Made by a program: the position numbers and the translations under genes. Below the pieces are notes generated by a model. That model did no database searches. It was not told the origin of the DNA and saw nothing but the letters and a program-made list of their open reading frames with translations. From Mytilus californianus (lineage: Eukaryota), in the NCBI RefSeq assembly GCF_021869535.1, contig NW_026262679.1, positions 72,602,001 through 72,666,000 on the forward strand: a stretch of DNA of 64,000 nt, in the 5' to 3' direction. Each line of letters opens with the position of its first letter. Position 1 is the stretch's first letter. This document shows, one piece after another, positions 17,176 through 63,864 of the stretch.

Positions 17176-20100
17176 CTGAAATAACATGCAATATAACTAA
17201 ATTTTACTGTAATACACATCTTTAATTAGAGTATGTATTCCGGTTCTTACTTGATGTCCTGCTCATTTGTTTCATCATTAAGTAACACAGTTCCTTTAAC
17301 ATGACTGGCTGCCAAAATGTCTGCATACTGACGAGCTTTCTCCTGATCACCATCATTAATGGCTGCATGCAGCAATTGAGTATAATGTTTCGACTGGTTT
17401 TGATCTTGTTTTGCTTTCATTGTAAGATTTTCTGCACAAACAGGTAAAAGGTTGTTATCATCTGCAATGTTTGAATTTGTCTTACCAGTGCACTCAAAAT
17501 CAGTATCTGATATATTGAAACCTTCACTAAAAACAATATTTTTAGCATCGTTATTCATGTCAACATTTTCACTATTTTCAGTATTTGTGTCTATGTCTGT
17601 AATTCTTAAAGTTTTCTCCAGGTTTTCATGCTGATCAGACAGAACTTTGACAATTTGTTTGTCAACATTTTCACTATTTTCAGTATTTGTATCTATTTCT
17701 GTAATTCTTAAAGTTTTCTCCAGGTTTTCATGCTGATCAGACAGAACTTTGAGAGTTTGTTTGTCCCCTATCATTGTTTCTCTGTCACCAATTTCTAATT
17801 CGATATCTACTATCCAAGCCGGATCATCAGCTGTTTGAAGAAAAAGCTCACATGACTGAGGTGAAGATAATGAACCATTTCTTTCTTTGTTGTATTTTTC
17901 CTCAGGGGTCTTTATATTTGATCTGAAATCTACTGTCCAAGCTGGATCATCGACTGTTTGAAGTAACTCACATGATTGAGGTGCTGATTTTGGACCATGT
18001 CTTTCTTTGTAGTATTTGCCTTCTCGAATCTTTACATCTGACTTTACTGATTGCGTACTCTTACTTTTTTCCAGTGCTTGATCTAAACCAGTAACTCTTG
18101 TTACATGAGGAGGAGGGTTATATGGCCTGTGCACGAGAGTATCTGAAGAACATGAATTATCACTGATTCCACTTTCTGATGAGCTTTTTCCTTTTATTGT
18201 CTGAATAAATTCATCCGGTTCTTTGTGTTTAAATCCTACTAAAATATATTCTGAAATAGAAAAAATAAAAATCAATGCATCATGTCAGCAAATGTATTTT
18301 TGATTTTAAAGCACTAAATCCATAAATGCAATTTGTTACTTTAGATCATTTAATTCAAATCAGTTGTTGGAAGCTCTTTTTAAGTATTGGAATGGATATA
18401 CATAAAAGTTCGTTATAGTTTCTCCTACTTAGTAGATCTTATTCAAGAAGAATTTTGTTATTTCAATAAAGCATAACTAACGTTCAATGATTTTAGATAA
18501 CTGAGATTGAAATGTAGCCCTTGTAGGTGCATGTCCCGAAATTATTTTGTGAGCCATCATTCATTCCGATTCCACTTTTTACACTATACAAACAGTAAGG
18601 CCATTCATAACAATCACTGTATACTCAGGCCAAGTGTCTTTGTAATCTCAAATATTTTGATTCGCTTATGCACTACAGTAGTCTTGGCGGCTTATTTCAT
18701 ACAGAACAAGATCACAATTGTACACTATTCAAAGGTTTACCGACTGCTTAAAATGTCAAAATCGCATTGAGAACCTTTTTTTTATTTATAATCTATACTT
18801 GAAAACTAATTTTATTGATAAAGTCGAAAAGAATGTTTAATGACGGCAAGTTTCTTAAATTTTTTTAAACCCATTCTTCATGATCTTTTCACTATCAATC
18901 AAAGTGGACAAAATGTCAAGCAAGAGGCTCCTAAGAGCATAATTCGCTCACCTGTCAATATATAGGAACACACAAACTAGTCAATAATCGTGTTATAAGG
19001 ACAATTACTCCTATTAGGAGTCATCCAACAGTTTCGGTCATATTGACATTCTTGTAAAGCTGATAATTTATGCTTTTACTGTTTCTACCTATCTTTTATA
19101 GTTTTCAAGATAATATAGGCAAAAACTAAATGATTAGTAAAAAATTATCATTTTATAACAAGTAAGAAAACACTCAAAAGTAGTAAAAAAAATCGTCATT
19201 TAAGGGCAATAACTGATAATTGTTTCGGTCATATAGGTATGTTTGTATATTTTAATATGTTGCGGTTTCACAGACACTTGTCCACATGCGCAAAATCAGT
19301 GTTATTATGGATCATTCGAGTTTCTAAATGAAAAGAGAGAGAGAGAGAGATCGTCTAACAATATAATTTTAACACTATATTTAGTATGTAAATATCAAAA
19401 ATATTTACAATGCGATAAAACAAATTGACAAATTAGCTTCATCAGTCTTGTATCTCAATGATTATCAGTATAAATGTGTATGTTGAGAAATACTACCTGA
19501 AACCAAAGATAATCAAAAAAAATATCACTAAACAAAATTTATTTGAAAACAAATTCAATAACCTGTTTCATGACGAGTAGGTGTTTATTGTATTAAAAGG
19601 ATAATTGATAGTATTGTTTCCTTCTCCGTTTATAGATTTGTGATATTTCTAATTGTTTCAACCTAAAAAGGAAGACAGCTTTCGTCATAATCAACACCAA
19701 CGTCCTTTCCATTCATGGGTATCTTAATATAGTTCTTAATAAGAATAGTATTCCGATCCAAGGATACGTGGAAGTGACACAAATCGTTTTTCCAGATAAC
19801 ACTTTATAAAGGTCATGCATCCGTACCCAAATACTGAATCAAAACATAGATTTAAAACATAAAATCCTATCAAGTCAAGGTTGCATGCAACCATCACCAT
19901 AAGATTAAAAATCAACTGTTTACAAAACTTGGATTTTTTCAAAATATTTGGAATTTTCTGCCCCTGGAATATATACTTTTCCTGTATTTGGCAAAGCCTT
20001 TAGGGACTTTTGGGTCCTTAAAAAATGCTCTTTGACTTCGTAATTAATCTAGCCTTTTCATCTTTTTTTATTCGAGCGTCAATGAAAAGACTATTGTAGA

Positions 20101-35406: not shown

Positions 35407-35546
35407 TCACATTCCTTCCTTGAGTTGAAGAGGTCCAATGTTCGGCAGTAAGTCTATAGAATTGTCTAGAGATATTGAGGGGAGAGGTACATCTTCAAAA
35501 TCTTCTGGTTCTAATAAATCTTCAAATCTAATTTCATCTGAATAAT
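35407..35546 (-). CDS. Securin-like terminal coding exon 5 (DYSDEIRFEDLLEPEDFEDVPLPSI...KEGM*)
   Basis: tttcag acceptor, phase 1, TGA at 35409-35407. Confidence 0.75.
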
Positions 35547-38500
35547 CTGAAACAGAAGATTAAACAGAACATTTAAATTTTGCACATCTGCAATTCAACT
35601 GATGATTCTTAAATATTTTGTCTACAAGTTGTTTTTCTTTCCAATGTCACAGATGCAATGAATCAACCAACACCAACTATCCCCAACTTATCAAATTTAG
35701 TTCATCAAGTTAATTTTTCTTTAAAAAATAGGTTTTGAGGTAAATATTACACAGCTATCAATACCAGTCATCAATGTACTTACATATTCAATAAACAAAT
35801 TTAGTGATGTTGAAAATGAGATGACAACAAGAAAATAAACTGTTGACACACAGACTGTCTTGCCTGTATATAATTTTGATAGTAAAATACAAATGTTGAA
35901 ATTAAAAAAGCAATACTTTTACATGTAAATTATGCAAAATACTAAAAGTCAAAGAACAATGACTTGAAGGAACAGAGAATTAAATTCTGAGTTATAATAT
36001 ATGTCAATGCCAATACAACTACCGATATATACTAAATATCATTGACTCATCATTAGTGGTTCCCCATAATAGAATAGAGAATGGAAACTGGGAATATGTC
36101 AAGAGAGGCAACAACCCGACCAAAGAGCAGAAACAACATAAACTGACCTAATCAAAAACTATACAAAAGTTTTAAAGTCACTAGACCATAACTAAGGGGC
36201 AGGGGCCAAATAGTCTCCATGGAAATGAGATGTACCAAAGCTTATACAACTGCATATAAAATAGAAATGACTTTATCATAAGTGATTCCCCTTAAGGATG
36301 CATTCTTCTGACGTTTCAGTCTCGTTGAAATCTCGTTCTGGAATTATTTCCAAAACATGTGATACAAGTGGAAAATATCAATGAATTTAAAAAATATTAT
36401 AATCAAACTTAACTCTGTGAAAAAATTGTGTATTTACAATAAGTAGTTTTTGAGTAATAAAATTTTAAAATTTTATAACCAATCAAGTCAGTCTCATTAG
36501 CCAAAATGTTGAGAAAATGGGTGAGGGGTACAAGAAATGATTTTACCAGATACATGTACATCCCATATAATTTTTTTCTTTTCAAATTTCTTAGATATGT
36601 ATTTTTTCAATCATTTATAACAAAGAAGTTGAAATAATATGCTTTTTGTTCTAGAAAAAAAGAGAAAAATCCCAAATTTACAAAATTGACAATATGGTAA
36701 ATTTGACACGAAAAATCAACAAAATTTTATAAAACTTTCTTATATTAACACCTACCCATAGTTTTTTTAAGTTAAATTTATTCAGATTGGTCCACTTCAT
36801 CTTTAGTGAAAGTATGAAAAAAAGTTTAATTGTGAAACTGTGATTTTTGTCATGATAATAGCCCAAAAATGGATGAAAAATGTGAAAATCATCAAAATTG
36901 GGTCCTTTCAAATGGCTGTAACAAAAAAGGAAGTACACCACCATATGATTTTTTCTCCACTCATTATTTTTTTACAGTCATATTAACCCAAAAATCAGGT
37001 TAAGAAAAAAAGTTTAATTCTAGACATTTTTGGCTCCTCAGAGGTGTACATCCTTAAGCTGACCCAATAACAAACTTTAACATGTAAACTATACAAAAGT
37101 TTCAAAGTCAATAATAGACCATGACTGAGCCAAATAATATCCATGGAAATGAGATGTGACAATGCTTATAGTTATACAACTGCATACCAAATATCATTGA
37201 TTTACCCTTAGTGGTTCCTCTTAAACTGACCTAACTTTTTCAAATTGTTTATTGCTACCGATGGAAACAGCATACCTAAGTCACGCTTTTTGACCGTGTC
37301 AAGGTGAAACAAAAATTGATGGTAAAAATTCAGTTTTTTTATTCATGATCCCACACCATATAATAAGCCATATATAGCTCTAAAAGTTTAAGAAAAATGT
37401 CCGATACCTGATTTTTCTGTTGAATATTTAGCTAAAGATGCTACCATCATTCTATCTTCTTCCTCCCTCATCCTTTGCCTCTCTAACTTCTCTTCTTCCT
37501 CATCACTTGAGTCAGGCAGTTCCCCAAACAAACAAGGTGGTCTCCAACGTACTAACTTATTAATGTATGTACTAATTCTGTCAGCTTTTGGCCAAATGTC
37601 CTCAAAATCATCCTCTAAATACAAATGATATAACAATGTAATAATTCACTTTTCAATCTTTCAGATCACTGTCTTAAATATCAATTGGATGACAATGTAT
37701 TTCTTAATTTCTTCAGATTAAAATCAGAGACATAAAAAAAATGAAGCATTGTCATTGTTGTCATCCAGCCAAATTTTTAGCTACTAGTCACATTTATTCT
37801 GATCTCATTTGTAATGTTTTTTTCTTTATACAAACTCTGCAAGACATTTCATGACTACCATTAAAACTTTGTGTGATTTTGGCCCAACAAGAAATTAGGT
37901 GGTAGGATAAAGTGTCTATAAATAAAAAAGAGAGAAAAGATACAATGGCACAATCTAAAATCATGTCTAATAAAATAGACAACATAAGAATTGAAGTGTA
38001 GAATTTTTCATTATTATAACTAACCAAGAGTGCACATGCTGAAATGTCTCGCCTGCTTTACTTGAATTTTTTTTATAGTCTGTAAATGAAGATTTTACTT
38101 CAAGTATCACATACAGTAATCATTGTCAAGGATCCATGAAAATGAGGTCACGGTTAGATGAACTATTCCAGACAGACATGTACACCTTACAATAATACCA
38201 TACACCAAATATAGTTGACCTATTGCTTATAGGAGAAATTAAACAAACATACCGTATATACTTAACCAGGAAGGTCAGATGAAACCTGCCAGTCGGACAT
38301 GTACACCTTACAATCAGTTAACACACCAAAACTAGAGGCTCTAAAAGGCCTGTGTCGCTCACCTTGGTCTATGTGCATATTAAACAAAGGACACAGATGG
38401 ATTCATGAAAAATTGTGTTTTGGTGATGGTGATGTGTTTGTAGATCTTACTTTATTGAACATTCTTGCTGCTTACAATTATCTCTATCTATAATGAACTT

Positions 38501-41500
38501 GGCCCAGTAGTTACAGTGGAAAATCTTTTGTAAAAATTTACAAAATTTATGAAAATTGTAAAAAATTGACTATAAAGGGCAATAACTCCTAAAGGGGTCA
38601 ATTGACAATTTTGGTCATGTTGACTTATTTGTAGATCTTACTTTGCTGTACATTATTGCTGTTTACAGTTTATCTCTATCTATAATAATATTCAAGATAA
38701 TAACCAAAAGCTGCCAAATTTTCTTAAAATTACCAATTCAGGGGCAGCAACCCAACAATGTGTTGCCTGATTGGTCTGAAAATTTCAGGGCAGATAGATC
38801 TTGACCTAATGAACAATTTTATCCTGTCAGATTTGCTCTAAATGCTTTGGTTTCAGAGATATGAGCCAAAAACTGCATTTTACCCTATGTACTATTTTTT
38901 AGCCATGTAGGCCATCTTGGTTCGCGGGCGGGGTCATCGGACACATTTTGAAAACTAGATACCCTAATGATGATTGTGGACAATATTGGTAAAATTTGTC
39001 TTAGAAGTTTCAGAGGAGAAGATTTTTGTAAAAGATTACAAAAATTTACGAAAAATGGTTAAAAATTTATTATAAAGGGCAATCACTCCTTAAGGGGTCA
39101 ACTGACCATTTTACCCAGTTGACTTATTTGTAGATCTTACTTTGCTGAACATTATTGCTGTTTACAGTTTATCTCTATCTATAATAATATTCCCGATAAT
39201 AACCAAAAACGACAAAATTTCCTTAAAATTACAGATTCAGGGGCAGCAACCCAACAACGTGTTGCCTGATTGGTCTGAAAATTTCAGGGCAGATAGATCT
39301 TGACCTGATAAACAATTTTACCCCATGTCAGATTTGGTCTAAATGCTTTGGTTTCAGAGATATTAGCCAAAATCTACATTTTACCCCTATGTTCTATTTT
39401 TAGCCATGGCGGCCATCTTGGTTGGTTGGCCGGGTCACCGGACACATTTTTTAAACTAGATACCCCAATAATGATTGTGGCCAAGTTTGGTCAAATTTGG
39501 CCCAGTAGTTTCAGAGGAGAAGATTTTTGTAAAAGTTTACGGACAAGGGAAGCAGGACGACAGATGCCAAGTGATGAGAAAAGCTCACTTGGCCCTTTGG
39601 GACATGTGAGCTAAAAAGGTGACCATTGTATTGATCCCATATACCAAATACATTTATCCTATTACTTATTATAAGTGAGTATTTCATATGAGAAAAAAAC
39701 TCAATTTTTTTCAAGCAGTCACAGAACCATGAAAATGGACAAATGGACACATTGTTACAGAAGGCATCTGCATACAAGGTATGAAGCATCCAGTTCTCTA
39801 ACTTCTAAAATATAAATCTGTAAACCAATTGTTTACACCGTTTACACCTGATTTGTCGCAGGCAAGACAAAATACCAACCTTCTTCTTTAGGAATGTGCA
39901 TATGTTCTATATCCTCAACCAGTCTTTTGTGTACAGGCTCTGTCTTTACTGTAACTTTATTGGTACTTATCGACTTTTTCCTCAGGTTTTCATTCACTGA
40001 CGGTTTCTGAAATATATTTCAAGCATTAATATTTTTTCCTCAGGTTTTGATTCACTGACAGTTTCTGAAATATATTTCAAGCATTAATAATACCTGTATG
40101 TATACATATCATTTATGATAATCTACCTGCCAGATAAACTACAATATATTAATTATGCATGCATTAATGTTATTTAAAATAAACTACGAAAACAATCAGA
40201 TGTCAACGAAAGGTCTGTTGAAACAAACTGGAAATCTGCAAGTCATTTTGTTTTTTTTAACAATTTCCTTGCATAGACTTTTTAATCTTGTCTCATTTAC
40301 TATTTCAAAAATACTGAGCTTTATAGGGCTAAAAATCTTTGCTATTCAAGAGACCAATGATGTATTTTGCCATACATAAAAATTAGTTTACTGTAGTATA
40401 TTGTAGTAAATATCTTGGTAAACCTCATCACGGTTAAGAAATATTGATGAATTGATTATTTGCTTATTGTATAGTAGCAAATATACTTGAATTATTGAAT
40501 GGGGGTTGGGGGATTTGATGGGTGGTGGTTATTTTAGACATATAGCCTTAATAATTATATGAAATAATCACTTTAAATTTTATGCATGGCGGGGTTAAAT
40601 AAAAAATGCCTTCAAACACCCCACTACATTTATTTCTGGAATAGCCCTCTGCATATTCAGGACAAGCAAACATCCCCCTACATTTATTTCTGGAATAGCT
40701 CTCTGCATATTCAGGACAAGCAAACATCCCCTACATTTATTTCTGGAATAGCTCTCTGCATATTCAGGACAAGCAAACATCCCCCTACATTTATTTCTGG
40801 AATAGCCCTCTGCATATTCAGGACAAGCAAACATCCCCCTACATTTATTTCTGGAATAGCCCTCTGAATATTCAGGACAAGCAAACATCCCCCTACATTT
40901 ATTTCTGGAATAGCCCTCTGCATATTCAGGACAAGCAAACATCCCCCTACATTTATTTCTGGAATTTTACAGGAGTTCTTTTGATTGCAGAGATTTTTCA
41001 CAACATGGAGTATCATATCCAAACAGTTACAGTTCAAAAAACATGTCATAAAACTAGATAGTTCTGTGTAAAACCAGGGTTCTCATTAAGTATTTTTGTA
41101 TGTAGCTTCCTGTTGCTCAGTCTTTAGTTTTCTATATTGTGTTTGGTATACTGTTGTTTGTCTTTTGGCCGTTTTTCATATTTTGCCATGGCGTTGTCAG
41201 TTTGTTTTCGACTTATGAGATTGGATGTTCCTTTTGGTATCTTTCCCCTCTCTTTCATAGAAGTGAAAATATAAGGGTAAGGAAATAAAACAAAATTTAG
41301 ATTAATTCTTTTAATTTTGGCTTTGAGGAAATGATGATAACTGGACTCATACAACAATGTACAAACTTCAAGCATCTCTGACTCATCAAGTCAGAAAATA
41401 ATGAGTGCTGACAGATTTTCATGAGTCCAGGACTCATAGACTCCTCTTAGTGAGAACCCTATATAACTGTTGCGCCTGATCCTTATCTACGTATCTACCA

Positions 41501-42198
41501 TTACCTGCATTATATTACCAGATCGACCAGTCAGGGGCTGTATGTTAGTTGATTTCATTTGCAGCCCTTTGTTCTGTAGTGGAAGTACTGAAGGTTTCTG
41601 CATAGGTTTAAGACCAGGTCCATTATTTACTGCCTTCAGATCTCTGTTTACATCACCTAGGGCACGTCTAGGTGTGACAAGACTCTGCTCATTACCTTTA
41701 TTGAACACCTTCCCTAAAAAATGTTATGACAAGTCATCAGTTAATTTCATATATAAATTTTTCAGACTAAATTTCTTCAATTTATTCATAAAAATTAGGT
41801 TCAATAAAAAATATTTTGCAAATATTTGTGTATTCATGTTTATATGATTTGTGCAGTATATTTTTTGTTTAATACAAAAATCCTCTTAGAACTGAAACTG
41901 CACATAATGTTGAAGTACCATATCAAATACAATGTTCTCAAAAAGAAAATTGTCATACAGACAGACACTTTTCAAAACTCTGTAAAATTTTACCATTCCA
42001 TTTTTTGCCTTTTTTATTCATAAACCATGCAAATGATGTTAGGTACTTTTGTTTATCAATATTCGACTTAACCCATCACTTAATCTCTCTTTTATAATTC
42101 TTACCTAGTCCACCACCTATCTGTCCTTTATTGGGTCGGACTCCAAATGATCCTGCATTCTCTTTATCAACATATGGTTGGAAGGCAAGGGATGCCAT
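35407..42198 (-). CDS. Securin-like protein (PTTG1/Pds1/Cut2 family), join(42198-42105,41713-41505,40006-39880,37614-37408,35546-35407), 258 aa
   Basis: Five exons with canonical splice sites and consistent phases (94+209+127+207+140=777 nt). KEN box at aa 12-14, D-box TPRRALGDVNR, basic disordered N-half, EDIEHMHIP motif, acidic C-half. No cyclin box or other folded domain. Confidence 0.75.
36296..37053. mobile_element. Non-autonomous Kolobok-like DNA transposon
   Basis: TTAA on both flanks; imperfect 16-bp TIRs (ggatgcattcttctga / tcagaggtgtacatcc) with GG termini. Confidence 0.7.
37408..37614 (-). CDS. Securin-like coding exon 4 (DDFEDIWP...WRPPCLFGELPDSSDEEEE...)
   Basis: atttag acceptor, TCA G|gtatcg donor; within ORF 37388..37636. 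Confidence 0.8.
38328..39617 (+). mobile_element. HINE/Helentron-associated non-autonomous element with two ~480-bp internal tandem units
   Basis: 5' aaactagaggctct..gcctgtgtcgctcacct, duplicated internal block (about 38570-39050 and 39070-39540), 3' hairpin agctcac...gtgagct followed by aaaaa. This is the architecture of bivalve Pearl/DTC84-like elements. Confidence 0.7.
39880..40006 (-). CDS. Securin-like coding exon 3 (KPSVNENLRKK...VEDIEHMHIPKEE)
   Basis: tttcag acceptor, GAA G|gttggt donor, 127 nt open. Confidence 0.8.
39976..40088. repeat. 58-bp tandem duplication spanning the 3' splice site of securin-like exon 3
   Basis: tttttcctcaggttttcattcactgacggtttctgaaatatatttcaagcattaata is repeated with 2 substitutions. 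Confidence 0.9.
40614..40965. repeat. 54-bp minisatellite, ~6.5 copies, in securin-like intron
   Basis: Unit aaacatccccctacatttatttctggaatagccctctgcatattcaggacaagc; it produces the spurious 18-aa periodic ORFs. Confidence 0.95.
41505..41713 (-). CDS. Securin-like coding exon 2 (D-box RRALGDVN)
   Basis: ttttag acceptor, CAG|gtaatg donor; overlaps ORF 41487..41708. Confidence 0.85.
42105..42198 (-). CDS. Securin-like coding exon 1 (MASLAFQPYVDKENAG...; KEN box)
   Basis: tttcag acceptor at 42206-42205, ATG 6 nt inside the exon, CTA G|gtaag donor. Confidence 0.8.
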
Positions 42199-42245
42199 AA
42201 TAATCTGAAACACGTAAATTTATTACATTATCATATTTGCAAAAT

Positions 42246-43010
42246 TAACAATAAAAGAAGAATGTGTATGAGGACACGAATGCCCCCGCTCAAGCCTTGC
42301 AATTTTCCAAGTTAAAAAGGGGCATAAATCTAGAACAGTAAATAACAAGCTGCCCAAATTCCAACTCTGTCTGCATGTTGTGGTTCTTAGCATTGTGTAT
42401 GAGTTTCATAAAATTTGGATGAAACAAACTTGTTAGAGTGCGGAAACTGAAAAAATTGCAATTTTCCAATTCATAAAGGGGCATAAATCTAGAACGGTTA
42501 ATGACATACTGCCAATATTCAAACTCTGTCTGTGTGTTGTGATTCTTAGCATTATGTATGAGTTTAATAAAATTTTGTTGAAGAAAACTTAAATTAGAGT
42601 GTCGAAACGAAAACATTTGCAATTTTCCAAGTTATAATGGGACATAACTCTAAAACTAACAAAATATGAACTCTATCTGTGAGCATGGTGAGTTTTAGTT
42701 CTCAGCATTATGTATGAGTTTCATAAATATGGATGAGGAAAACTTGTTAGAGTGCAGAAACGAAAACATTTGCAATTTTCAAAGTTATAAAGGGGCATAA
42801 CTCTAGTACAGTTAAGTGACTCACTGCCCATATTTGAACTCTGTCTGCAAGTTTTAGAGCATTGTGTATGATTTCATAAAATTTGGATGAGTAAAACTTA
42901 TGTTAAGAGTACGGAATGAAAATGTGAGGGAATGAAGAATGGAAAGACAGATGGTCAAGGGTAACACTTAATGATCCTGTTGTCTATGGCGAGGGGCACA
43001 TTAAAAAAAA
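42246..43010 (+). mobile_element. HINE-type element with ~160-bp internal tandem array (~4 copies)
   Basis: Units begin near 42301, 42461, 42621 and 42774 (aattttccaagtt..aaggggcataaatctag); 5' aaca..gaatgtgt..ggacacgaatgcccc and 3' ...ggggcacattaaaa ends. Confidence 0.7.
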
Positions 43011-45245: not shown

Positions 45246-46879
45246 TAGATATAAGAAGATGTGGTATGAGTGCCAATGAGACAACTCTCTATACAAGTCA
45301 AAATTTATAAAAGGTCAAAGTTCGGTCTTCAACACGGAGCCTTGGCTCACACGGAACAGCAAGTTATAAAGGGCCCCCAAAATTACTAGTGTAAAACCAT
45401 TCAAACGGGAAAACCAACGGTCTAATCTATATAAAAAACGAGAAACGAGAAACACTTATGAACCACATCAACGACAACTACTGAACATCAGATTCCTGAC
45501 TTAGGACAAGTGTAAACAATTGCAGCGGGTTTAAACGTTTTAATGGTACCAAACCTTCACCCTTATTTGAAACAATAGTGTACGTAACGTTAAACATAGA
45601 AAAACACACTATAAAATATCACTTGAAATGGCTTAACTCAATCAAAAGACATATATTAACACCAGTGAATATACACCGAACAAATAAATTTGATCTATGA
45701 TACAATGCAAATACAAAATAAATAAACTAATTAGGGAAGAATATTTAAAGTAACATGTTATACCGCTGTGAAATGTTAAACAATCTAAAAAAAAACAATA
45801 TACTTTAACAAAAATATCAGCCATTTGCAATTACTTTTTAAACACAGGTAAATAAAAATAATTTTGTTGTTAGGTATACGTGTACAGTTCAAATAGAGAA
45901 AGGAAATATTTTTACAAAATAAATAATTTTGATGCTCATAGTACGAAGAAGTGAAAAATGATAGTAATACCAAACACTTATCAAAGCTGGTATATAGACC
46001 AGATATAACCCTGAATAACATTAAATAACAAAAAAGCATTACAATTAGTATCAGCAGGTCATAAACAAGAAAGTACAATTTGAGAGTACTCGCAGTTACT
46101 GACAGCTAGTTAAAAGCCAAAAACAATTAATAATAAAAAAATCATGCATCAGAGAATCTTTGTATCTATGAAAGAATTTATTAAAAGTTTTACGTAATTT
46201 ATGGTTACGAAATCCCTGACTTCATAATTTACCAGTGATTATGTTCGTTAAAATCTATGACATCACTACACACACGGGCATAACGAACGAGTTGGGATTT
46301 ATAAACACCGTATGATGGAGCCAAAGGAACATCGCCGTCTAAAAAAGGAAAATTAACAATAGGGAATGAAAAGTCGTCTCTTTTGTCGTAAATTTTAGTA
46401 TGGAGTTTTCCTTTAGAGATTGAAATATCCAAATCTAGAAAAAGACAACTACTGCTGTTTATGTTAGATTTAGTTAAAGTAAGTTCTTTTGGGTAAATTT
46501 CTGTAGCATATTTAGAAGACTCTGGATTATTTAACGAAAAAATATCATCTAGATAACGGAAGGTATTGTTGAATGTATCAACCAAATGTAACAATGACGT
46601 GTCTTTACTGAGTTTGATCATAAACTGAGATTCATAGCAATACAGAAATAAATCTGCTATTAAAGGGGCGCAGTTAGTGCCCATAGGAATACCTACTACT
46701 TGTCGATACACTTTATCGCCGAAACGTACATATATGTTGTCCAGGAGAAAATTTAAAGCTTCAATCATATCTTCACATTTCCAGTAAGTGTATCGAGCAT
46801 ACTTTCCTTTTTCGTTACAGAAAAAAGCTTTAAACGAGTTAAAGCAAATAAATTTGTAATGATATTTTTCAAAATGCAT
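45246..46879 (-). mobile_element. Truncated Penelope-like retroelement: RT fragment (46879-46229) plus non-coding 3' trailer
   Basis: The 216-aa ORF has YRQVVGIPMGTNCAPLIADLFL, FRYLDDIF and FLDLDI..KLHTKIYDKRDDFSFPI motifs. It stops before the GIY-YIG endonuclease and is followed by the repeat found dispersed across the window. Confidence 0.85.
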
Positions 46880-56000: not shown

Positions 56001-59000
56001 TAACTTATTAGGAGACCAGCAAAACATGAATTCAGAATGTTTTTGTGACATTTTTAATACTAAAATGCAATAGGGTTAGTATCACATTATTAGTATGCAG
56101 CTTCTCCTGAAATTACATTAATCAATTGCACATTTTTTGCATCAATCAACAATTGTGAAAATAAATGCATACAATAATTTCTGAATTGACAGTATTCAAG
56201 ACAGTTATATTTTTAGTACAGGTACGGTATATCCGAAATGTGTGATACTGACATCAAATTGCATCTGTTGTCTGTCATTTACGTCTCTTATTTTTATATC
56301 TTGTCATGTTATCTGACCTGGGCTACCTAAACACATGTATTTCTCAAAACAAGAAAAATGACAATTGATGAAACACACGCTTTAACAAATGAAGTCATCT
56401 CTATCAGTTTGGCCAATACAAAACAATCATAACCTTAGAAGGTATAGGTCACTGTTATTTTGACATATAAATGATATAAAATTCAATGAGAGAGAGAAAT
56501 TGACACAACATATATATTTATAGTAGAGCACGTTTTTGATGTGAGTGATTTTTTTGTTGTCCAAGGGGAACCTTTTATCTTACATTCGCCAAATAAGATC
56601 TAATATCTTAATGCCACTATAATCATTAGTTTCAGATATAAATACATTTTTATTGATAGCAGATTTTGCTATAACTTAATTTCAATATGAATTTTATTTT
56701 AGCCCTATCATTCCTTGGTAATTAAATTTCTTTGTAATTCCACACTGACACTTTTTTTCTTTCAGAGGAAGGAGCTGATGAAGAAATGGCAGATAATGAA
56801 GATACACCAGAAAATGAACAGATTAAGAAAAAGAAAAAAGTAAGACACACTCCCAACAGATTTTTGGTGGAAACTATAGTATTTTATTTAGATTTTTTTT
56901 AAAAATGCTTTATTATCAGTTTAATAGGAAGCATCTTGCCATACATATGGAATATGACCATTGACAGACATAATTTTTGAACAAAGCACTTTTTTTTATA
57001 ATTTGCATTGTAAAGAACAAGCTTAAAATGCTTCTAAAATTACCGAAACAGAATGTAATCAGACCTAAGGTGATTGAAATTTGTAATCATTTTACAGACT
57101 ACTTAAGGTTGGAAATTAAAAAAAAGTTAAGATGAAAGAACAACACAAAGACAGATTTGAAGATCAGACACGGATTACAATTCCCAAGATTTTTATTCTT
57201 GAGAAGATAAAGAATGAGAAATGAGGATTATATTTCTTAAATCCCTCAACAACTTTTTAGGTTTGAAGTTGTCTTTTACACTGTACGACTTGTTTTATAT
57301 GTGTATAAACCTCACACTATTGTTTTTTTTGCTTCAAAAATGGTAATCAAGACAGCTGGCTTTGAACATGGTAAATTCAGAAATCATGTGCAATTGTTAA
57401 TCAACAGACAAAAATATACGAGATTAGTAATTGTGATTTCTTTAAATGCTGCATAAAGATAAGATTGTGAGAATTAAGAATGCAAATTCTTAATAATGTT
57501 ATGCTTATCCCTTCCATTTTTGATAATTTCTAAAACTAACGGTATGTAAAGTCAACAATATTGTTCATTTTACAGTTGACAGATCTACTTTGGTGTATCC
57601 TTCACTTTGTTTTAAAAAGGTGTTCCATTCTGCTGCTTGTTATTTTTGCTACATTTTTGGGTTCTGTCTTTATAATTAGCAGCATATCCTTTTACTAGCA
57701 TACAACGTGGTGCACATATTCACTCTTAACAATGGACAAGTTTTACTTTGTCCTTTATAAACCCCTAGTGGAACAAGATATATTTATTTTATCAGTTTGA
57801 TAACTTTCCATTGAACCATCAAAAATGAATTAGGGGCCTCGGTGGCTGAGTGGTCTAAGTAGTTACTACTATAATCACTAGCCAGTCAACACTGAGGTTG
57901 TGAGTTCGAACCCCGCTTGTGCGGGTGCACTCGACTCCAATTTTAATTGACTAGAATTGTCAGTTTTCCTATCGAAGGTCAGTGGTTTTCTCCGGGCACT
58001 CTATGGCTTCCTCCACCAATAAAAACTGGCCGCCACGAAATAGCCCAAAAGCGGTGCTTAAAAGTGGCTTTAAAACACCAAAAATCAAAAAATCAAATCA
58101 AAAATGAATTGAAAGCTTCAGATTTTTTTTACTCATGGAGCATTTGTTTCTTACTAGAAGTACCAAAATGATCACTTACATAAATGTTATTTTCAGAAAA
58201 AACATACAACAGTGGAAACAAATCTAAAGAACATTACAGCTGCTAAAGTAGACTTGGCATTTGAAGTAGATCCTATGTTTCAACTGATGTCAGAGGCCTT
58301 TGATGAAGGAGGAACCATGGGATTGCTACATAATACGTTAAGGTGTTTTAATGATGATCAGGAACTGGTCTTAGATTCAAGTACTGTTGTAAATGCTGAT
58401 GATGAAATTCAACCATCACAAAATAAACCTATAGATTTAAGTGATATAAAAGGTTTGTACAATTTAGTTATTGCTTTACTTTATAAGTCTCAATAGAAAT
58501 ACAAAAAGAGTACTGAAATAAAAAGATCCAAATCTGTCCATATAGTTATACTGGTTCACCCCGTCTATGTCCCATAATATTTTCATTGCATCTTTCTCAG
58601 ATCTACAAATCAGAGCTCCCTGAGAATGGGTAGCAATGTTAATGTGAGCAAGCTATACCCTGTGATAATTTTCACATTCATAGCTCATCAATTTCCTGTT
58701 CACAGAGTACTCTCATATTCTGACACATTATGGCCATGTATGAAATTTTCTTCATATTGTTCTCAGGAACAATGAATCGAAAATCCCCAAAATTTGGTTT
58801 CGAGCTTCATTTGAACATGCTATACTGTGTGAAGCCTTTTCACAATCATTGTTCATCCACTTTCTGTATACTGAAAATTCTTACACATGATAGTTATGTA
58901 TGAAATTATTGTTGCATTGTTCTTCGGAACTATAAATCATAACTCCCACACATAAGTAAGCATGCTTAAAATATTGTGATGTGTTTTTACATTCATTGCT

Positions 59001-62000: not shown

Positions 62001-63066
62001 TTAGTCCCTGGATCATTAGTATTCTATATTTAAAGCTACAATAAAATTAAATCACTTAGTCTAGTGATTAATTTGTACTACTTAAATAGGTGATTATTAA
62101 AGAAAGACAACCCTTACTTCCAACCTTTATGGACATAATGTTACTTGAATCAGTGATTTAGAAAATCACTCATTTAAGTAAGTCCCCTGACTGGTAAAAA
62201 AACACTAAAAAAATGATGATAAAAAACACAAATTAATAAAAGCTTGTGAACATTTTTTCCCTTGCAGGGTTTAAGCAAGGTTTATCGAACAAAGAATAAA
62301 ATATAACATGATGAGAGATAATGACTTGCTAAGAAGTGTTCATTAACTATTTTTGAGTAGCTCCATTTTCTTGTCATCATAGTTATACACTTGTAATATA
62401 TTACCTGATGATTGAAATGACCCCGATTTTTTTGTAAACTTCCTTACCATGAGTATATTGCAGACTGTATTTTTTTAATGATTTAGTACCAAAAGTGCCT
62501 TAAAAATCTGTGGGGTATGCATATTGAAGTAAATTAGGGAACCCTACACACAGGTAATTTTTATACACTAACTGTTGGAGTTGGGGCTGTATTGTATCCT
62601 TCCATCTGTAAGTCCAACAGATTTTTTTTTGTCACACTTCACCAAGGAACTATTAAACAGAATGACTTTATATTTAATCAACATTTTACAGTAATGAGTT
62701 GAAATGCGGTGAAGCTTGTCAGATATCTGCTTCCTGTTTGCAGATTTTAAAGAAAACAAATATTAACATTTATGTCCACATCTTTCATGCAGCTTGCAAT
62801 ACATATATGTTGTAGCAACACTATTCTTTTCAGATAAAAGATTGAACAACCAAACAGAACAAGGAAAGAAGAAATTAAAGAAAGAACCATTTAAAATGGA
62901 CTATGAACAACAGATAGACTTTGATAGTTACTTCAAATCGTCTAGAGCAACAATGTTAACAAAAGCAACAATGATAAAACATAGTAAAAAGAAGAACACA
63001 CTCCCAAAAGATTTACATTATGATGCTGATAAGTTGTTTAGATTATTTCAGAAAGCCAAAGTTATG
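52815..63066 (+). CDS. NCAPH: Condensin complex subunit 2 (CAP-H/Barren kleisin), 11 coding exons in window (521 aa), 3' end beyond window
   Basis: join(52815-53056,54109-54196,55073-55159,55790-55919,56766-56839,58197-58452,59200-59288,59740-59878,60046-60142,61137-61264,62834-63066), all GT-AG and in phase. Hallmarks: [50 protein letters not shown]...FDEGG, YSYF...[16 protein letters not shown]. Confidence 0.95.
54109..54196 (+). CDS. NCAPH: NCAPH coding exon 2
   Basis: [12 protein letters not shown]; ttttcag acceptor, gtatgg donor. Confidence 0.9.
55073..55159 (+). CDS. NCAPH: NCAPH coding exon 3
   Basis: [29 protein letters not shown]. Confidence 0.92.
55790..55919 (+). CDS. NCAPH: NCAPH coding exon 4
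   Basis: [32 protein letters not shown]. Confidence 0.92.
56766..56839 (+). CDS. NCAPH: NCAPH coding exon 5
   Basis: Acidic then basic linker; ttcag acceptor, gtaaga donor, phases fit. Confidence 0.85.
57833..58100 (+). mobile_element. Full-length tRNA-derived SINE with 14-bp TSD in an NCAPH intron
   Basis: A-box tggctgagtgg, B-box gagttcgaacc, central ggttttctccgggcactc..gcttcctcc (V/Meta-type conserved domain), (aaatc)n tail; atcaaaaatgaatt at 57818-57831 and 58097-58110. Confidence 0.85.
58197..58452 (+). CDS. NCAPH: NCAPH coding exon 6
   Basis: [27 protein letters not shown]...LVLDS. Confidence 0.92.
59200..59288 (+). CDS. NCAPH: NCAPH coding exon 7
   Basis: [15 protein letters not shown]. 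Confidence 0.9.
59740..59878 (+). CDS. NCAPH: NCAPH coding exon 8
   Basis: [11 protein letters not shown] acidic segment; phases fit. Confidence 0.88.
60046..60142 (+). CDS. NCAPH: NCAPH coding exon 9
   Basis: ttcag acceptor, gtaagt donor, phase 1 to 2. Confidence 0.85.
60560..60734. mobile_element. Tourist/Harbinger-like MITE
   Basis: taa|gggactgtt ... aacagccc|tta ends; internal inverted ggggatgggaggcact / agtgcctcccatcccc. Confidence 0.55.
61137..61264 (+). CDS. NCAPH: NCAPH coding exon 10
   Basis: [24 protein letters not shown]. Confidence 0.92.
61422..62193. mobile_element. Non-autonomous TIR DNA transposon with 5-bp TSD GTAAA
   Basis: cagtcaggggactta... / ...taagtcccctgactg TIRs; gtaaa on both flanks; internal aagtgatttt repeats. 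Confidence 0.8.
62834..63066 (+). CDS. NCAPH: NCAPH coding exon 11 (last in window)
   Basis: ...[22 protein letters not shown]; donor ATG|gtaaga. Confidence 0.9.
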
Positions 63067-63864
63067 GTAAGAATATTATGCCCCTACAATGAAAAGATCC
63101 GATATGGTGTAGATGCTTATGAAACAAAATTATATAAACTTACTAGAACTGGGAGACATTATCTTCCTGTGGCATAAGTATCTCTTAATGCAGTGATGTC
63201 ATCTCCTTCATTAAAAAAAAAAGTTTTTGAATGTCTCTATTTTTCTCACAAAGATATATTTAATCCCCTATAAAAGTTTAGTGATATGTAAGTAAAGACT
63301 TCCCCTTTCTTATCACTTCAGTAGGTTATATATTTGAAATTCATAAAGATCTTACAGGTTGCACTTCTGTAAATATAGACAATGCAATTTCCCATATGAA
63401 CTCCTTTTACAGCTAAAACTACCACTTTTACTATGAAGTTTCATAAAAAATTATATCCTAGAATGGAAAGCTCATATGCACTGCTATTTTTTTTAAAGGT
63501 CAAAATAAAGGGCTGTGCGGCATATTTTCAACATTTATATGCCCCGAACTTCTTAGAGTTTAAACTTCTACTAAAATTCTGTTCTACCCCTCACTTCACT
63601 TTGTGTCTTCCTCAGAATTCAATTTTGCCACTATTCATGTGTATTTATACTGGTAACCACCCCAAGTTATGTCTCTACGAGATGAAACATAGAGATCATA
63701 TCTGGGAACCAGTAGGTAAGCAAAACAAAATATCTATGAATATTATATATCTCCCCAAAAGAGGCTTGGTTTGTGAAACTGCTGTATTTACAAAGTACAA
63801 CCTACATAACTCTGTGTCTGCTCTTTGTAAAAAGAATCATCAAAGATATCAGGCTTATGATTTT

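Follow-up and report, generated by a model that had tools for sequence, protein, structure and literature searches.

Human securin (PTTG1) contacts separase at four sites. The first is a pseudo-substrate, E113-I-E-K-F-F118, with a hydrophobic residue in place of the P1 arginine, the second an NxLx-Phi-E motif (N-P-L-D-F-E, containing D124-FE), and the third and fourth are the exosite motif L130-P-E and a hydrophobic site (PMC6858450; PMC10317155). Drosophila Pimples, C. elegans IFY-1, yeast Pds1/Cut2 and plant PATRONUS resemble the protein described below in being disordered APC/C (anaphase-promoting complex/cyclosome) substrates with an N-terminal degron and a glutamate-containing pseudo-substrate patch, and they are not retrieved from a mollusc or a vertebrate profile (PMC6690013). 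A PSI-BLAST search starting from the scallop protein XP_021355525.1 has been reported to reach human securin within four iterations (Cromer et al. 2019, PMC6690013). Here we describe a minus-strand gene of the mussel Mytilus californianus, located in a stretch of 64,000 nt from contig NW_026262679.1 (positions 1-64,000 of the stretch, without any N; referred to as the window), and its 258-aa product is very probably the mussel securin, which would bind separase as a pseudo-substrate and release it on APC/C-Cdc20-dependent degradation. The link between molluscs and securin is not new: the homology was published at the family level in 2019 (PMC6690013), the gene model is present in RefSeq, and two orthologues, from the scallop Mizuhopecten and the limpet Patella, carry the name 'Securin' in UniProt/UniRef. 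The additions made here are the mapping of the motifs and a mollusc-specific conserved block.

Relationship of the mussel protein to human securin

The mussel protein possesses a KEN box at residues 12-14, a destruction box (D-box) within TPRRALGDVNR (residues 45-55) and the sequence VEDIEHMHIP at residues 131-140. Its first part is basic (residues 1-129, 22 K+R versus 7 D+E) and its second part acidic (residues 130-258, 37 D+E versus 15 K+R). This layout is shared with human securin (7NJ1 chain B), which is likewise a disordered protein in the range of about 200-260 aa with a KEN box that falls within residues 1-14 and is set in the same Met-Ala-x-Leu...VDKEN context, followed by a D-box of the type R-(R/K)-A-L-G-x-V-N-R, a [D/E]-I-E-x-Phi-Phi motif with a P1 residue other than arginine, D-F-E, Phi-P and an acidic C-terminal half. 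AlphaFold2 modelling, based on the family alignment and applied to the M. galloprovincialis orthologue (P0037, 94.5% identical), gave a mean predicted local distance difference test score (pLDDT) of 56 and a predicted template modelling score of 0.25, with the N-terminal half below a pLDDT of 50 and helices predicted at 157-166 and 182-206 only, a prediction which would fit an intrinsically disordered, extended binder of the securin type.

To collect relatives we used the 68 aa of exon 4 as query in an exhaustive search of a protein set, and this exon by itself yielded 34 relatives (E<=1e-10 for 10 of them). The exon 4 block lies at about residue 130-200 of the full-length ones, which comprise 214-313 aa. 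In further searches and in the cluster records all taxonomically named relatives are molluscs: bivalves (Mytilus, Pecten, Mizuhopecten, Argopecten, Ylistrum, Saccostrea, Solemya), gastropods (Haliotis, Gigantopelta, Patella, Batillaria, Babylonia, Biomphalaria, Lymnaea, Physella, Aplysia, Arion, Bradybaena) and the chiton Liolophura. Orthologues thus exist across Mollusca, and wherever an NCBI name was shown it reads uncharacterized or hypothetical. In an alignment of 24 mollusc members (A1) the KEN box is found at about residue 12 of all full-length sequences, one of which (P0043) reads QEN, while P0007 is truncated N-terminally before this position. The D-box is present in every member at about residues 45-50 (residue 16 in the truncated P0007) with R47 and L50 invariant in all 24, and Saccostrea and Haliotis possess two D-boxes. 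Three further residues, P152, R156 and W167, are invariant across the 24 members. The [D/E]IExM motif is conserved in bivalves, vetigastropods, the limpet, caenogastropods (where it reads D-I-E-Y-M-P) and the chiton, and its P1-equivalent is histidine and never arginine. Solemya (P0011) and the metagenome member P0043 show D-R-E-N-M instead and keep the glutamate alone of this pattern. The scallop orthologue P0004, identical to XP_021355525.1 and listed as A0A210QL71 ('Securin'), shows about 50% identity to the window protein and is collinear with it over the full length, including KEN, D-box, EIEHMHIP and WPKSERISTY...WRPPC, whereas the disordered linkers between these motifs are unrelated in sequence and the animal belongs to a different bivalve order.

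The profile built from the 24 members was compared with 177,635 PDB sequences, and human securin (7NJ1_B) was the top and sole significant match (E=3.3e-4, 24.1 bits; the next chain had E=1.4). The alignment spans residues 1-103, i.e. only the N-terminal third, where it pairs the Met-Ala-x-Leu..(Y/H)VDKEN context, a G-K-x-F patch and (T/P)-R-(R/K)-A-L-G-x-V-N and so extends beyond the bare KEN box. The ESM-Atlas features led to the same assignment, placing the protein beside a mollusc cluster automatically named Securin (score 0.95) and a chordate cluster (0.93, 196 shared features), half of whose members carry the Pfam family Securin (PF04856). Together with the published PSI-BLAST link these results uphold the assignment as bivalve securin that a preliminary description of the locus had made from its sequence, although the separase-binding half showed no statistical similarity. 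Each test run favours securin and no test favours another family, in support of this identity.

Several results weigh against it. The preliminary description had proposed a search with the Securin profile, and PF04856 gave no match at E<=10 for the 24 members, the exact protein or the five exon pieces; the precomputed Pfam fields of the family members are empty as well. As the PF04856 model is mostly built from chordates, this miss lowers the formal Pfam membership and not the homology. A phmmer search of the PDB with the full-length protein alone found no match, and exons 1, 2 and 4 gave chance matches only (E>0.7), these pieces being too short. With a profile of the C-terminal half (A2) no securin was found in the PDB at E<=10, and the sole match, TMEM87A (E=1.1), was judged to be a chance match of acidic low-complexity sequence. 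Residues 120-256 alone still ranked the same securin clusters first in the Atlas, with scores of 0.78-0.80 that are rated as a lead only. Therefore the statistical link rests on the degron-bearing N-terminus, and N-terminal degron motifs occur in other APC/C substrates too, full-length chains of which may or may not be contained in the searched copy of the PDB. Six heterobranch gastropod members (P0022, P0024-P0027 and P0031) do not contain [D/E]IExM but keep KEN, D-box and W-R-P-P-C-L-F-G. In the searchable literature on securin and Mytilus, oyster or bivalves we found generic mentions, with no characterised mollusc securin and no report of separase binding, degradation or a phenotype.

Searching a set of 5.8 billion proteins with the family profile (E<=10) returned molluscs and one metatranscriptome protein only, vertebrate securins being unreachable at such a database size. 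This protein, P0063 (233 aa, from marine metatranscriptomes, L001/L002), has an E-value of 1.1 against the family profile and contains KEN, P-E-E-R-I-S-T-Y and, as a D-box-like site, R-S-A-L-Q-N-V; it could stem from outside the molluscs or be a divergent relative. The yeast and worm securin chains in the PDB were matched by neither of the two profiles.

Gene model, transcription and constraint

Re-splicing of the minus strand by script gave five exons and a coding sequence of 777 nt for 258 aa plus stop, base for base the same as in the preliminary description, including KEN, D-box, VEDIEHMHIP, the basic N-terminal and the acidic C-terminal half. All four introns are GT..AG and each acceptor is rich in pyrimidines. 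The model is identical over 258/258 residues to RefSeq XP_052101082.1 ('uncharacterized protein LOC127735035', Mytilus californianus), a record of the same protein with no functional name, to which the securin label is the sole addition. Coding exons of just 31-69 codons explain why the gene is poorly visible in a list of open reading frames (ORFs), as had been pointed out before.

Coding exon 1 (94 nt, 42105..42198) extends from Met1 into codon 32, of which it includes the first base, and ends at the donor AG/GTAAGA. It encodes the N-terminus Met-Ala-x-Leu...Tyr-Val-Asp-Lys-Glu-Asn, which aligns to that of human securin, and contains the KEN box at 42165-42157. Exon 2 (209 nt, 41505..41713) covers residues 32-101 of the basic disordered region, with the D-box R47-R55 (RRALGDVNR, aligned to human RKALGTVNR) at 41669-41643. 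In exon 3 (127 nt, 39880..40006; residues 102-143 plus one base) lies the candidate pseudo-substrate D133-I-E-H-M-H-I-P140 (39913-39890), and exon 4 (207 nt, 37408..37614; residues 144-212) encodes D146-F-E148 and the family's best-conserved block, W151-P-K ... W167-R-P-P-C-L-F-G174 (37594-37523), with an acidic/basic helix after it. Exon 5 (140 nt with the TGA stop, 35407..35546; residues 213-258), which is the same in XP_052101082.1, forms an acidic tail with the conserved ending ...LPS.SLD.S.D..P..G.L.L. No second gene copy is present in the window, where the tblastn matches are the five exons and a duplicated 58-bp fragment of exon 3. This fragment belongs to a tandem duplication at 39975-40089 (two copies, 96% match) that repeats the acceptor of exon 3 together with the initial 32 nt of the exon; splicing to the distal acceptor would lengthen the exon by 58 nt and reach a stop, and the transcript contig described below uses the proximal one at 40006.

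Reads and contigs were mapped to 36500-42499, i.e. to exons 1-4. One Logan contig (X5 record 18, 1771 nt) maps to 37408-37614, 39880-40006, 41505-41712 and 42104-42280, in coordinates of its own that follow on without a gap, and therefore the three junctions of exons 1-4 are base-exact, allowing for a one-base ambiguity at two of them. A second contig (X2 record 11, 1568 nt) from another study and with another species label links exon 4 to exon 2 with a gap of 126 nt in its own coordinates, 1 nt below the 127 nt of exon 3. In X21, a stranded RNA run, depth over the exon bins is 3-8 in one orientation and 0 in the other, and it is 0 in repeat-free intron bins. The junction of exons 4 and 5 is supported by the RefSeq models, by mRNA-sized Logan contigs that encode full-length orthologues and by a further 1049 nt of record 18 past exon 4, and not by mapped reads; its acceptor is identical in the M. 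galloprovincialis locus. The expectation that transcripts join these exons was thus borne out by contigs from two studies for exons 1-4 and by RefSeq and orthologue models for the last junction.

The 5' untranslated region (UTR) is contiguous with exon 1 (42199..42280), the contig being unbroken from 42104 to 42280. An acceptor-like 'tttcag' just 5' of the ATG was rejected as a splice site, because the contig reads through it and it is therefore unused as an acceptor in that transcript. The 5' end of the contig coincides with the edge of a tandem repeat, so that 42280 is the last transcript-supported base and a minimum 5' extent. This repeat of 159 bp (42297-42899, 3.8 copies, 75% match) begins 17 bp upstream of that base.

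In M. galloprovincialis the orthologous gene is 4.9 kb long and agrees with this one in exon lengths and splice sites. Here the gene spans 6.8 kb owing to insertions of interspersed repeats. Between the two species the ratio of non-synonymous to synonymous substitution rates (dN/dS) is 0.09 at a dS of about 0.25, and the gene is under strong purifying selection. The exon chain is a real, spliced and transcribed gene as modelled. A chance chain of exons or a pseudogene, for which only the short exons and repeat-rich introns would speak, is refuted by the spliced transcripts, the exact RefSeq model, the low dN/dS and the phylum-wide conservation, and we attach practically no weight to it.

High-copy interspersed repeats lie at 38000-39800 (intron 3), 36900-37300 and 41100-41300, with contig word depths in the hundreds of thousands and strongly one-sided coverage in the stranded run (up to about 880 versus 34). 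Intron 3 also contains two near-identical ORF-bearing units of about 160 bp, about 500 bp apart (38643-38804 and 39142-39303). A 54-bp minisatellite in intron 2 (40613-40965, 6.6 copies, 97% match) gives rise to long spurious ORFs on both strands.

Proposed binding mode and competing explanations

In the C-terminal half the order of motifs, D133-I-E135-H-M-H138 (P6 Asp, P4 Glu, P1 His), D146-F-E148, W151-P152-K and a block ending in W-R-P-P-C-L-F-G, is the same as in human securin with spacings within two residues, which is a pattern match only; the likeness of this half to the human protein is collinearity at the level of motifs. The two proteins differ here in that the mussel half has no similarity detectable with hidden Markov models, in the docking motif (W-P-K versus L-P-E) and in the human stretch H-L-P-L-S-G-V-P-L-M-I-L, which is replaced by the invariant R-x-S-x-Y...W-R-P-P-C-L-F-G. 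A PF04856 match is likewise a feature of the human and not of the mussel protein.

From these motifs a model similar to that of the human complex can be proposed. The C-terminal half would bind separase in an extended, antiparallel manner as a pseudo-substrate, with D133-I-E-H-M-H138 occupying the (S/D/E)xExxR site and presumably uncleavable because histidine replaces the P1 arginine. D146-F-E148 would be placed in the NxLx-Phi-E site and W151-P152 in the LPE exosite, while the invariant ...R-I-S-T-Y...W-R-P-P-C-L-F-G block and the following helix might extend across the helical domains of separase. In metaphase APC/C-Cdc20 would recognise the KEN box (12-14) and the D-box (47-55), two family-conserved N-terminal motifs to which we assign a degron role from their sequence, and the ensuing ubiquitination and degradation of securin would free separase to cleave cohesin.

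The protein could also be a securin by descent in which the mode of separase binding has diverged, so that the mollusc block (Phi-P-x-x-E/D-R-x-S-x-Y ... W-R-P-P-C-L-F-G) is the main anchor and DIEHM is dispensable or not the plug of the active site. The C-terminal profile without a securin match, the position of the invariant P152, R156 and W167 in this block and not in the DIE motif, and the six heterobranch members that retain the block without [D/E]IExM would all agree with such a divergence. Yet most non-heterobranch members keep a [D/E]-x-E-x-x-[non-Arg] pattern at the human distance from D-F-E and Phi-P, and the heterobranch members possess, immediately ahead of Phi-P, an acidic D-[DE]-E-[EY]-D stretch that could fill the same role, and we consider this explanation unlikely. 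Less probable still is a different APC/C substrate, i.e. a lineage-specific cell-cycle regulator which acquired KEN, D-box and an acidic tail by convergence and does not regulate separase. It would account for the negative Pfam result and for a significant similarity to human securin that is confined to the degron region, but this similarity exceeds minimal degrons, since the whole N-terminal context is collinear with human securin, and no other PDB chain was found at E<1. The published PSI-BLAST search converges on vertebrate securins, and the order of motifs in the C-terminal half agrees with them too. A securin acting as pseudo-substrate is thus clearly preferred.

More tentatively, mollusc securins might form a distinct subtype whose main separase anchor is the phylum-specific block Phi-P-x-x-E/D-R-x-S-x-Y-x-x-K-Phi-x-x-W-R-P-P-C-L-F-G, which has no detectable vertebrate counterpart, and in which the [D/E]IExM plug was lost in heterobranchs; we regard this as possible, though not as the likelier case. 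If it holds true the docking mode has co-evolved with mollusc separase, and the family would offer a route to study the rewiring of securin-separase interfaces.

A justified securin label fills a gap in the cell-cycle parts list of bivalves, even if what is added is an incremental step. In bivalves the oocytes stay arrested in meiosis until they are fertilised, and commercial triploids are produced by preventing extrusion of the polar body. A securin that has a name and whose KEN, D-box and candidate pseudo-substrate residues are mapped is a handle for studying this meiotic step, while the relevance of the gene to oocyte arrest and triploid induction, which the preliminary description had suggested, is speculation.

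Other features of the window

Outside the securin gene a 216-aa ORF at 46229-46879 (minus strand) appears by eye to be reverse-transcriptase-like (...GIPMGTNCAPL...); it has no Pfam match at E<=0.01 and is a candidate only. A long exon at 17250-18275 (minus strand) shows a weak match to the tethering motif of the linear ubiquitin chain assembly complex (LUBAC; PF25393, E=1.7e-4, below gathering). Two exons at 58212-58493 and 62794-63174, both on the plus strand, encode parts of condensin complex subunit 2 (Cnd2/NCAPH/Barren; PF05786, E=5e-14 and 5e-11, both above gathering). This gene, another one connected with mitotic chromosomes, is located on the strand opposite to securin, about 16 kb beyond its 5' end.

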